From: Diplonema japonicum
Lineage: Eukaryota; Protista; Euglenozoa: Diplonemea
DNA length: 64,000 nucleotides
Reading direction: 5' to 3'
Assembly (NCBI GenBank): GCA_964019335.1
Contig: OZ025658.1
Span: 434,001 to 498,000 of the forward strand
The notes below the pieces were generated by a model that worked only from the letters and a program-made list of their open reading frames with translations, was not told where the DNA came from and did not search any database. A program made the translations under genes and the position numbers. Positions within the stretch are counted from its first letter, which is position 1. Each line of letters starts with the position of its first letter. Shown in pieces: positions 5,223 through 18,654 of this stretch.

Positions 5223-5330
5223 CAGCCGCAGGCATCTGTCTGAAGGAGTGTAAAACAGCAGAGCAAATATAGCACTAGAAAAGGATCAGAAAATACAGCA
5301 CTGCAGATAACCCTCTGCACTCCCACGTAC

Positions 5331-5440
5331 TTCTTACGGGTTTCAGCGAAGTGTCCTAACTAGTAGAGCCGTATCAACTTTGCTGATGGCCATTGCGTCT
5401 AGTTCAAGGCGGACACTCGCATCACACGACCCAGAAGACA
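5331..5440 (-). promoter_or_regulatory. Candidate SECIS element (elongated, non-canonical apex) in the 3' UTR of the GILT gene
   Basis: Minus-strand RNA: helix I UUCUGGGU/ACCCGUAAGAA, core GUGAU/UGAA, helix II GCGAGUGUCC/GGACACUUCGC, then further stems AACUAG/CUAGUU and AUCAGC-AAA-GUUGAU. Lies about 170 nt downstream of the stop of a gene with an in-frame TGA. Confidence 0.6.
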
Positions 5441-5609
5441 ACGAAGGCAATGCAGTGGTTCTCATACAGTGCCGTAGTTCGGTCTCAAGGACTAGATCCC
5501 CCGAAGGGGCTCTGCACGCACTTTCTTTTTACACGGCACTCTATTGCTTACAACACGGACTACTAAGGCACGCACGCACGATTTTTTTTTTTTTTTTTTT
5601 TTTTTTTGT

Positions 5610-6299
5610 TTAAGCACGTGGGCAGCCTGCGGGCTTGGCGCCCGTGTACTCTTTGCACACAGTCTTGAGAAGGTCGTTTGTGTTCTGGAGGTACTTGCCG
5701 TTCACGGTGATGTAGGGAACACCAGGGTGGCCGCCGGGGATATCAGCGGTGGTCCTGGCAGCCTGGATCGTGAGTGCCTTGGCACCAGAGGATTTGGTGC
5801 AGGCAGTGATGGCAGATCCAGAGAGACCAAAGGCGGCAGCACAGGAGTTGAGGTAAAGATTATCAGCACCGTGCTGACCCTCCCAGCAGTGGACGAAGGG
5901 CATGTACTGCTTGGCACCCGTGGTGGATTGGTTCTTTGCGCAGCTCTCGGCGATGTTCCCAAAGCACTCGTGGTCGCCGTGCTGGCAAACCATGGTGCCT
6001 GCGAAACAGTCGCTGACGGGGTTCTGCCCGCACTTTGAGTCCCAGCACTGCCTCACCGTCACGTCGTAGTGCCCAGGCGATCCACCACACTCCTTCGTTG
6101 TGAAGAAGGCATTGCCCCAAGGCACGTACTCGAACTCCATCGCACTCCAGATGCCCTCCGCAGAGAGCGTCTGGTTAATAGGCCCCATGATGGCCTGCTT
6201 GCACCCGGGTCAAAGGGACTCACCGTAGAACATCACCTGCACCTTCTCCTGTGCACTCACCATGGAGAAGGCCATGGCAGCCATAATCACTGCGCGTTG

Positions 6300-6302
<3 letters not shown>
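5610..6302 (-). CDS. GILT (gamma-interferon-inducible lysosomal thiol reductase)-family selenoprotein, UxxC active site (TGA at 6210-6212)
   Basis: Signal peptide MQRAVIMAAMAFSMVSA, then VMFYGESL-TGA-PGCKQ continuing in the same frame into YVPWGNA, CQHGDHECFGN and VPYITVNG, which are GILT signatures. 693 nt = 231 codons. Confidence 0.88.
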
Positions 6303-6333
<31 letters not shown>

Positions 6334-10913: not shown

Positions 10914-12290
<1,377 letters not shown>

Positions 12291-16182: not shown

Positions 16183-18654
16183 TCACCGCGTGACTGATAT
16201 AGGTCTAGGAGGGGATCTTCTCGTCTCATTTTGCGACGTACGGTGAGGCGGTGTCACTGTGTCCGGTGACGGTATGTTGCTTGAAATGAGTGTTTTCATA
16301 GCAGTAGAGAGGAGTCTGTCGGCAGGGCCCATGTCGGGGATGGCATCGAGGAGTCGGTGCGCAACAGGCGACGCATCTGGTGTGAAGGGATCGATCAGTG
16401 TCGTCTCCTCGTTGAAGGACACGTTGAGCTTGCCCGCAAACTTCGCAGGTGTGGGCATGGGAGATGGGATCCTTGGAGGCGGCCTTGAAGGCTTCTTCGT
16501 ACTGCTGCTAGCGTTACTAAAAGGTGACCTGGAAACATCAAGCTTCAAGACCGTCACAGGGGTGTTCATTGTAGGTGATGACGCAGCGCTTGTAAAACTT
16601 TGCATATTCAAAGCCTGTGCCTGTGCCTGAGCCCGTGCCTGAGCCTGCTCACGTGACGGTGGCGAGCGCGACGGGGTGTGTGTCAGTGTCTTTGTATTCC
16701 CTGCATCTCCTGGGCTGTGGTACCGTGTCTGCTTGCGTGTGTGTGTCTGCGGCGGTGTGATCTCCCTCGCACCTCCTGTAAGGTGACTCAGCGGTGTTAT
16801 GTTGTACTTGTCTGAAAGGGCACGTGATGTGTTCAACGAACCCACACGCGACGGCGTGCGTGCGAAAGTCGTGTCCATGTCCGACGTCAGTACCGATGAG
16901 TTGTGCGTGCCGTCGACGACAACTGTTTCATCGTGCACAGTGCGCTCCATCCTGTCGTGGGACTTGTCTCGCGTTCGGAGGAATGATGGTTGCAATGACT
17001 TCACTGACACGGGGGATTCGACAGGCTGCTTCACAGGTGATTTGATCAAGGGGTACACAGTCTGTACCTCACTCACAAATAGCTTGTTCTGCTGCACTTC
17101 TTTAGGGGAGTACGGTCGGAGTTGCGGTTTGAAGACATCAGCGGTTGAACTCCTAGTTTCTTGATGCTCCGTCAGCACAGGTGATGGCGGTTTAGAGGTG
17201 GGCATGAGCTGCGGGTAAGCCGACTGGTGACCTTGCCAGCGTGGTGGCTTACCCGGAGACACCTGTGCCGCGTAAGTATCATGAATGTCGTTGAACTGCA
17301 GTGCTTGCATGTCTTGTCTCGGTAACACACGGTACGGCACGGCATGCTCAGTAGGACCTTCAGTCAGCTGTGCCATGCGCTGTGGGCTCCCGGTGCCTGA
17401 TGATGCTGTCTCGTGTGCACTGTGAAGGTCGCCCTGTGGAATGGGTTGTGTGTCTTCTAAGACATCGATGGACACTTCACGACTCTGAGCTTCGTAATAT
17501 TGGAAAATTCTCTGGGGTTGCAACACATCAAAGAATGCAGCGTTGTCGTGGTTGGAAGTGTTCTGCCGCACGGTGCTGTCTGTGACCGAAGCGTCAGGTT
17601 GCGTGAGTTCGAACTGCAAGTCGTGAGCGCTGACACCAGAAGCCTCGTAAAGGTGCGGGTGATGAGAATCAATGCTTTTGTTGCTTTTGCTTGCAGGGCT
17701 AGCTGAATGCAGATCGGTATGTAGGTCGCTGGCATGGAGGCTCGAGTCAACCGACTTGTGCGAAGCCAACATAGAAGTGGGTGCCATGCCCTGGAGCGGC
17801 CCACCCTCGCCGAATAGCTCAGAAGCGTTGATGTCCACCACGACGGTTGACGTCTCGTCAGCCGCGTGCGAGGGCAGTGGAAGCGACGGTGGGTGGATGG
17901 AGGAGGGGAGAGACGCTGCAGGCCGCACTGCCCAAGCACATTGCGGAGATAGGGCAGTCTTAGGCGGAGGCGGGGCATCGCTCACCTCGTCCATGGGTAT
18001 GGGCGACGCCCTCGGCGAGCCTTCGAAATAGCTCTCGTTCCTCGGTTCGTGTTCCGATGTCTGTCTATCCGAGTGATGGGAGTGCACGCTTGCATCTTCA
18101 GTAAGCGCCTCCTCTCCTTGCGCAATTTCTAATCTAGCTATTCTGTGGTGGTGTCCCGTGCCGCCTTGCAGCAATATACACAAATATCGTTCAACAGTGG
18201 TGACAGGAAGGTAGCAGGCGTACTCGTTTTTCCCAACCAAGTCCCACTTATACAGCTGCTTGAAGGGGCCATGTGGAGAAGTGCCTGTTAACACACTGCA
18301 TGTCTTAGGACACGATCTTTGTGTGTGCGCTGTTAGGGCGACCTTCAGTACAGGGCGGTCTCTGTAAGTATGGCGGTTTCTGTTCATTTCCACCACGCAC
18401 TTCGTCTCGGTGCTTCCCCCTACCCAAGCAAGATTCTTGCATGTCCTGCCCACAACGCTGCTTGCGTCCTGCACTAAAATGTTCTCGCATCCTCTTCCTG
18501 TCGAGCTTATTAATTTGCGGACTGCGCACAGCGTCGGCTTAGCTCTCTCCACCTTCTTCTGCCTGGGTGCTCTAGCGTTACCATCTATTTGTTTTAAAGC
18601 ACCACCCCCCAGTGTGACGGGGTAGTCGAGACGACCAAGAACCCTGGTGGCCAT
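16183..18654 (-). CDS. Hypothetical protein; possible N-terminal beta-sandwich domain and long disordered S/P/T-rich tail
   Basis: 823-aa ORF co-oriented with its neighbours. Confidence 0.7.
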   Translation of the reverse strand: MATRVLGRLDYPVTLGGGALKQIDGNARAPRQKKVERAKPTLCAVRKLISSTGRGCENILVQDASSVVGRTCKNLAWVGGSTETKCVVEMNRNRHTYRDRPVLKVALTAHTQRSCPKTCSVLTGTSPHGPFKQLYKWDLVGKNEYACYLPVTTVERYLCILLQGGTGHHHRIARLEIAQGEEALTEDASVHSHHSDRQTSEHEPRNESYFEGSPRASPIPMDEVSDAPPPPKTALSPQCAWAVRPAASLPSSIHPPSLPLPSHAADETSTVVVDINASELFGEGGPLQGMAPTSMLASHKSVDSSLHASDLHTDLHSASPASKSNKSIDSHHPHLYEASGVSAHDLQFELTQPDASVTDSTVRQNTSNHDNAAFFDVLQPQRIFQYYEAQSREVSIDVLEDTQPIPQGDLHSAHETASSGTGSPQRMAQLTEGPTEHAVPYRVLPRQDMQALQFNDIHDTYAAQVSPGKPPRWQGHQSAYPQLMPTSKPPSPVLTEHQETRSSTADVFKPQLRPYSPKEVQQNKLFVSEVQTVYPLIKSPVKQPVESPVSVKSLQPSFLRTRDKSHDRMERTVHDETVVVDGTHNSSVLTSDMDTTFARTPSRVGSLNTSRALSDKYNITPLSHLTGGAREITPPQTHTRKQTRYHSPGDAGNTKTLTHTPSRSPPSREQAQARAQAQAQALNMQSFTSAASSPTMNTPVTVLKLDVSRSPFSNASSSTKKPSRPPPRIPSPMPTPAKFAGKLNVSFNEETTLIDPFTPDASPVAHRLLDAIPDMGPADRLLSTAMKTLISSNIPSPDTVTPPHRTSQNETRRSPPRPISVTR

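Follow-up and report, generated by a model that had tools for sequence, protein, structure and literature searches.

A GILT gene of Diplonema japonicum with an in-frame TGA at the catalytic cysteine position and a SECIS-like element of non-canonical core

The locus at 5610-6302 on the minus strand of the Diplonema japonicum DNA analysed here (contig OZ025658.1, positions 434,001 to 498,000, 64,000 nucleotides in all; hereafter the window) raises the question of whether a single TGA inside a GILT reading frame is decoded as selenocysteine (Sec), ends translation, is read as an ordinary amino acid, or is simply a defect. The 230 codons of the locus translate as M-QRAVIMAAMAFSMVSAQEKVQVMFYGESL-*-PGCKQ...PRA-stop, with the TGA at codon 31 as the one internal stop, in agreement with the earlier note, where the signal peptide and YGESL-TGA-PGC were placed in the GILT frame with no second lesion. 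It is highly probable that the window gene is a genuine, intact selenoprotein gene with Sec predicted at the catalytic Cys of GILT. This reading, which the earlier note had put forward as a site-specifically recoded Sec-GILT truncated by gene callers, is supported by the pairing of the TGA with Cys, ten TGA-bearing paralogues, the presence of Sec machinery, a SECIS-like element and independent assemblies. The features of the locus are listed in Table 1.

Table 1. Features of the window gene and of its 3' UTR, in window coordinates
Feature	Position	Strand	Evidence or remark
Complete coding sequence of the predicted Sec-GILT, without intron	5610-6302	-	Single frame; match to Pfam GILT; Cys homologues align across the TGA with no gap
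In-frame TGA, predicted selenocysteine codon 31	6210-6212	-	Cys pairing; ten paralogues; independent assemblies
Redox motif U-P-G-C (U predicted)	6201-6212	-	Pairs with CPFC/CPYC (Rhynchopus GILT) and CGAC (human GILT)
True stop codon TAA	5610-5612	-	Translation; TAA or TAG likewise in all seven distinct GILT genes
Probable signal peptide MQRAVIMAAMAFSMVSA	6252-6302	-	By eye: hydrophobic core, small residues before Q18
A30 tract directly 5' of the start codon (5' UTR)	6303-6332	-	Sequence; contigs break here
A26 tract directly 3' of the stop codon (3' UTR)	5582-5607	-	Sequence; short-read contigs break here
SECIS-like stem-loop, 3' UTR, 172-280 nt past the stop and 786 nt past the UGA	5330-5438	-	Fold; scorer rank; shared motif
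Putative SECIS core, 5' strand U-G-U-G-A-U	5421-5426	-	TGTGA invariant in 10 aligned elements; G where the canonical core has A, then quartet UGA
Putative SECIS core, 3' strand U-G-A-A	5342-5345	-	Tandem G.A/A.G pairs with the 5' UGA, direct from sequence
Helix II, 5' strand GCGAGUGUCC	5411-5420	-	Pairs with 5346-5356; arm pair -17.5 kcal/mol
Helix II, 3' strand GGACACUUCGC, one bulged U (GGACAC-U-UCGC)	5346-5356	-	Fold
AA, candidate for the AAR motif, 16 nt past the quartet	5403-5404	-	Would sit where a third helix (AACUAG/CUAGUU) begins

The membership of the window gene in the GILT family was determined from the part of the protein that follows the TGA. The 199 residues past the TGA matched Pfam GILT (PF03227) at 47.1 bits against a cut-off of 22.4 bits, and full-length Cys homologues scored 65-67 bits against the same model. 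A database search with the post-TGA piece returned six relatives, four of which were full length and carried Cys. In a MAFFT alignment with Cys homologues from Rhynchopus euleeides, ENA and Logan, the window segment FYGESL-TGA-PGCKQ paired column for column with FYGESLCPFCKQ of the four Cys homologues, the full-length Cys relatives reading ...KVxVxFYGESLCPFCKQ... and the window gene ...KVQVMFYGESL-TGA-PGCKQ.... The Rhynchopus protein P0002 also matched the solved human GILT 6NWX (E=1.3e-16) with its CPFC falling on the catalytic CGAC, and through P0002 the UPGC region of the window protein pairs with YYESLCGACRY of 6NWX. The GILT CxxC that follows a beta-strand (YYESLC-xx-C) is thus found in the window gene with a TGA codon replacing the first Cys, and the TGA/Cys pairing that the earlier note had asked to be checked was borne out against both the Cys homologues and 6NWX.

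Thioredoxin-fold selenoproteins use both UxxC and CxxU. The statement of the earlier note that Sec often replaces the first Cys therefore holds only in part.

Besides the redox motif, the N-termini of all paralogues and Cys homologues were hydrophobic at the position equivalent to the signal peptide, and NQT and NQS sequons were present in the window protein. From the signal-like N-terminus and the family membership, a secretory or lysosomal location may be inferred for the window GILT. A-rich tracts like the A30 and A26 tracts of the window gene also flank the remaining GILT, GPx and SelT genes, and the short-read contigs of every run end exactly at the two tracts of the window gene. Elsewhere in the window, an alpha-tubulin gene lies at 10914-12269 on the minus strand, ending ...EEDVEEY, and the long ORFs are all on the minus strand from 1 to 41.3 kb and on the plus strand from 48.9 kb on, forming a divergent strand-switch region.

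A lone in-frame stop is what a recent nonsense mutation or a wrongly called base would also produce, so a pseudogene or a TGA arising from sequencing or assembly has to be weighed against the Sec reading. Two further studies of this organism provided contigs over 5619-6291 that differ at no letter, and the runs X11 and X12, guessed to be RNA, carried the TGA unchanged; the transcript of the window copy was not found among the EukProt D. japonicum ORFs. The same TGA letters thus appear in the assemblies of three studies, whereas an assembly error of the kind considered in the earlier note would have given TGC or TGT in the reads. A whole-genome Pfam search (62.5 Mb, 132 contigs) revealed ten GILT genes, located on contigs C5, C95 (two), C33 (three), C78, C64 (two) and C11, the last being that of the window. 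In 10/10 of these genes the motif (UPGC or UPAC) opens with TGA, and in 0/10 with Cys. The protein of the window gene shared only 47-53% identity with the remaining distinct copies of the genome, so that the codon has been kept in ten paralogues about 50% different in protein sequence.

The pattern of substitutions around the TGA points in the same direction. Downstream of the TGA, 40 synonymous and 9 non-synonymous codon differences separated the C95 and C78 GILT genes, and upstream of it 8 synonymous and 6 non-synonymous differences separated those on C5 and C33; judged from these codon counts, close GILT paralogue pairs are under purifying selection on either side of the TGA. A pseudogene or base error was therefore rejected, given the absence of any second lesion in 230 codons, the agreement of three studies, the TGA in ten paralogues and the purifying selection downstream of it, and we consider its probability negligible. 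A general change of the code is likewise not the explanation. TGA is the terminator of 6/22 long ORFs in the window, among them those ending at 16183, 37823 and 55373, which the earlier note had listed as ordinary TGA stops, and this indicates that the recoding of TGA is site-specific. The window TGA is no assembly error, pseudogene or code change.

Termination at the UGA would leave a peptide of 30 residues only or, after a restart at Met39 or Met56, a GILT without signal peptide and CxxC. The TransDecoder ORFs of D. japonicum and D. ambulator are truncated in exactly this way, starting at the first Met after the TGA, as the earlier note had expected of automated annotation, and one of them, P0006 of D. 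japonicum, is contained letter for letter in the C64 GILT copy. The segment before the TGA (signal peptide and KVxVxFYGESL) is nevertheless kept in frame across paralogues and Cys homologues, with synonymous changes, and it is implausible that ten copies should all be without catalytic motif and targeting signal. Termination as the normal fate of the UGA is accordingly given very little weight, and the truncated ORFs are attributed to the gene callers. Since these callers cut the Sec-GILT short in two diplonemid transcriptomes, diplonemid annotations will miss this redox-enzyme family unless Sec recoding is modelled.

If the UGA is decoded as Sec, the components for Sec synthesis and insertion are expected in the same genome. 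A tRNA-Sec was found at 72.9 bits (cut-off 47) and was called by ARAGORN as SeC with anticodon TCA; SepSecS was found at 384 bits, together with a PSTK-like kinase of the KTI12/AAA_33 type. SPS2 was itself Sec-containing, with LKG-U-GCKIPQ at L020:1456-2568 (G000 C38). Further in-frame TGA codons were present in three GPx genes at the classical Sec site (NVASKUG and similar), in SelT (CISUGY), in two deiodinase-like genes (SFSURP and SYSUPP) and in SelO (VVTUSS). eEFSec was not singled out with the bacterial selB model, whose best genome match is an EF-Tu-type factor (L038, G000 C41:69307-70173, with domains GTP_EFTU, D2 and D3), followed by weaker matches on C23, C74 and C63. Of the machinery that the earlier note had proposed to look for, tRNA-Sec was thus recovered, but eEFSec was not pinned down with this model. 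An Rdx-family (SelW/H-like) gene (L021, G000 C42:330010-330222) carries the Cys motif QYCGGCGY, so Sec is not used by every redox family of the genome. In one of the GPx genes (L024, G000 C56) conserved GPx blocks are separated by an unusual insert (...NQSFTLMPWFSCCCCCKN...), probably a micro-intron of the sort reported for the D. japonicum genome.

The 3' UTR of the window gene was inspected for an element that could direct Sec insertion. In the fold of the stem-loop listed in Table 1, helix I is formed by UCUUCUGGGU pairing with ACCCGUAAGA and is followed by the 5' internal loop CGUG, the quartet UGAU against UGAA, a 10-bp helix II, an AA-containing internal loop and a further helix. As modelled, this is a form-2 SECIS architecture with two departures, a G preceding UGA and an AA that sits 16 nt away from the quartet; at the canonical distance of 9-12 nt it shows no clear unpaired AAR. 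The element ranked first among 38 kink-turn candidates on both strands of the 64-kb window (128 kb), at -27.6 kcal/mol against -24.7 kcal/mol for the runner-up, with a scorer that adds up the core and the arm-cofold energies of helices I and II, cannot handle branched elements and, like the UGUGAYR motif described below, was partly defined post hoc after the data had been seen. A stricter kink-turn scanner missed the element owing to the helix bulge, and its fold is not unusually stable (z = -1.27; 19/200 shuffles fold as well). The Rfam SECIS models gave zero matches in the 3' UTR of the window gene, in the paralogue loci, in the metagenome loci and in the whole genome. An AUGA further upstream (~5466) was also weighed as a possible SECIS core but discarded, its helix II having just 6 bp with a mismatch and no A-rich loop.

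The same core was found in other genes of the genome. Each of the seven distinct GILT genes, and SPS2 too, had UGUGA(Y) in its 3' UTR with a helix-II-like arm behind it. The SECIS-like element of SPS2 (L020:2778-2854) has, as does that of SelT, a helix I of CCAU/AUGG and the core UGUGAC...UGAA. In the seven test genes whose downstream sequence was examined (SelT, three GPx, two DIO-like and SelO), UGUGAYR was found in six, at readable offsets of about 20-445 nt past the stop in five of them, the stop of SelT not being fixed. Within 600 nt past the stop, UGUGAYR was present in 14/15 selenoprotein genes against 4/22 control ORFs of the window, the control rate matching the random expectation of 0.19. 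The one examined selenoprotein gene without the motif in this interval was a GPx gene with NVASLUY (L026, G000 C106). A lone TGTGAT about 860 nt downstream of L026 appears to lie inside the next gene, and a weak SECIS candidate is offered by a AGUGAUGUGUCU...AGACAC hairpin some 405 nt downstream.

In the MAFFT alignment of ten elements, TGTGA was invariant and the C three positions on nearly so, and a run of A was found 13-20 nt from the quartet in 8/10 of the elements; the alignment brings together the 5' cores of the elements and not their 3' strands. Kink-turn partners were better at the motif sites of selenoprotein UTRs than at 40 other motif sites of the window (Mann-Whitney p=0.002), and four selenoprotein sites, led by that of the window gene, beat every control site, with the scorer finding a partner for just 8/14 selenoprotein sites. 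Between the 3' UTRs of the C95 and C78 genes, identity was near random, yet both basal arms of the element were 100% conserved and its apex was replaced. A second conserved island, GUGUGACA(A/C)CAGCGUGA, occurs near the stop of the same two genes, at about 45-62 of the L010 3' UTR (C95) and about 27-45 of that of L015 (C78), in UTRs that have otherwise diverged. Taken from sequence comparison, these data suggest a non-canonical, lineage-wide SECIS core in diplonemid selenoprotein genes. A literature search found nothing relevant on GUGA-type SECIS.

It could also be supposed that the UGA is read by a tRNA for Trp, Cys or Arg, either near-cognate or suppressor, which places an ordinary residue in the active site, with no Sec. 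Such a reading would account for the lack of a canonical SECIS by Rfam and for the fact that eEFSec and SBP2 were not pinned down, selenium at UPGC being a prediction; it does not account for a TGA exactly at the redox Cys in ten paralogues and at the textbook Sec sites of SPS2, GPx, SelT, DIO and SelO in the same genome, for the presence of tRNA-Sec and SepSecS, or for a common 3' UTR motif that marks the TGA-bearing genes, and TGA remains a normal terminator in 6/22 ORFs. Readthrough with an ordinary amino acid is therefore judged very improbable, if slightly less so than termination.

With Sec as the preferred reading, the product of the window gene would be a signal-peptide-bearing disulfide reductase of the GILT family with selenocysteine as the attacking active-site residue (U-P-G-C). 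The UGA at codon 31 would be decoded by tRNA-Sec rather than by a release factor, and the likely directing signal would be the kink-turn SECIS stem-loop at 5330-5438, in which a lineage-typical core UGUGA-Y ... (U/G)GA-N would replace the canonical AUGA ... GA; we infer both the Sec insertion at codon 31 and the SECIS function of this element. The product would most likely enter the secretory or endolysosomal pathway and may reduce disulfides of ingested or turned-over proteins.

To place the window gene among its relatives, sequences from outside the genome were compared. The relative from Diplonema ambulator was 79% identical to the window protein, its TransDecoder ORF beginning past the TGA position. 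A metagenome scan yielded seven loci, of which three had TGA at the same codon and three distant ones had Cys. The TGA-bearing loci L031-L033 (33-39% identity) read FYGEALU-PEC, FYGEAHU-PGC and FYGEAGU-PEC, and a canonical AUGA...GA SECIS was read by eye in the 3' UTRs of L032 and of the related contig L034, with the CxxC/UxxC region of L034 not visible on its contig and the scanner having flagged a neighbouring position for L032. The 3' UTR of L033 (metagenome contig Ga0314705_10152613, about 905-915; 33% identity) contains CAUGUGAUGC, a core of the D. japonicum type, and L033 may therefore come from a diplonemid, an origin that, if true, would connect part of the ocean's 'orphan' Sec-GILT sequences with diplonemids.

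In the ML tree, the window gene joined its orthologue from D. ambulator with support of 91/96, the other six distinct copies of D. japonicum formed a separate clade (95/99), and the Rhynchopus/ENA Cys clade stood apart from the window gene, the order of the three clades not being resolved. This placement indicates that the window gene represents a paralogue lineage of its own, older and shared with D. ambulator. With Cys in Rhynchopus and predicted Sec in D. japonicum, a Sec/Cys exchange has happened within Diplonemidae, in a direction on which the tree is neutral.

Sec-GILT first came to light in Global Ocean Sampling reads, where it was described as a new eukaryotic selenoprotein family of unknown hosts (Zhang & Gladyshev 2008, PMC2398784), and among algal selenoproteins it is listed with the least widely distributed (PMC7539508), a listing that agrees with the earlier note, where the family was said to be known from some marine algae. 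The family itself is thus already known; it was not known from diplonemids, where all ten copies use UGA. The literature search found no paper on diplonemid selenoproteins and nothing relevant on Bodo selenoproteomes, and the D. japonicum genome note (PMC13598402) makes no mention of selenoproteins. Diplonemids become candidate hosts for some of the 'orphan' Sec-GILT reads of ocean metagenomes. The known marine Sec-GILT resembles the window gene in its GILT domain with UGA at the first CxxC position, and in L032 it has a 3' UTR SECIS where the window gene has a SECIS-like element. It differs in that the host of the window gene is a heterotrophic diplonemid and not an alga, with 33-39% identity to L031-L033, a ten-copy family that is, as predicted, all Sec, and a GUGA core in place of the canonical SECIS of L032 and L034.

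The Cys-GILT of Rhynchopus euleeides (EukProt EP01061; P0002, P0003) shares with the window protein 55-58% identity past the active site, an equal length, the probable signal peptide and the FYGESL-x-P-x-C context, and differs in having Cys (CPFC, CPYC) in place of the predicted Sec. Human and mammalian GILT (IFI30, 6NWX) shares the Pfam family, the conserved Cys framework and an N-terminal signal sequence, a probable one in the window protein, but has Cys (CGAC) where the window gene has TGA.

With the canonical SECIS (Rfam RF00031, AUGA_AA_GA kink-turn), the SECIS-like elements of D. japonicum share the location in the 3' UTR, helix I, the internal loop and the tandem G.A/A.G quartet, as well as a helix II of about 10 bp, the A-rich loop and an extra apical helix (form-2-like). 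They differ in having G for the conserved A before UGA in all 14 found, in the A-run 13-20 nt from the quartet, and in that some are long or branched, to about 165 nt. On balance we lean, by a small degree, towards a diplonemid SECIS specific to the lineage, with invariant U-G-U-G-A-Y-R, often elongated or branched and invisible to standard models, that serves a large selenoproteome including a ten-gene digestive GILT family without Cys back-up. Such a SECIS, if real, would imply that SBP2 has co-evolved with it and that highly abundant heterotrophic protists of the ocean depend strongly on selenium, and its testable consensus, UGUGAYR ... NGAN, would allow selenoproteins to be properly annotated in diplonemids.

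Kinetoplastids are the sister lineage within Euglenozoa and share the same general Sec machinery. In PMC12153298 (citing Lobanov 2006 and Cassago 2006), they are reported to have three selenoproteins only, SelK, SelT and SelTryp, with none of the remaining known families. The earlier note was right that GILT falls outside this set; the lineage, however, is diplonemid and not kinetoplastid, so that the comparison concerns the sister group. Against these three, D. japonicum has in-frame TGA at least in ten GILT genes, SPS2, three GPx, SelT, two DIO-like genes and SelO, indicating that diplonemids kept or built a rich selenoproteome.
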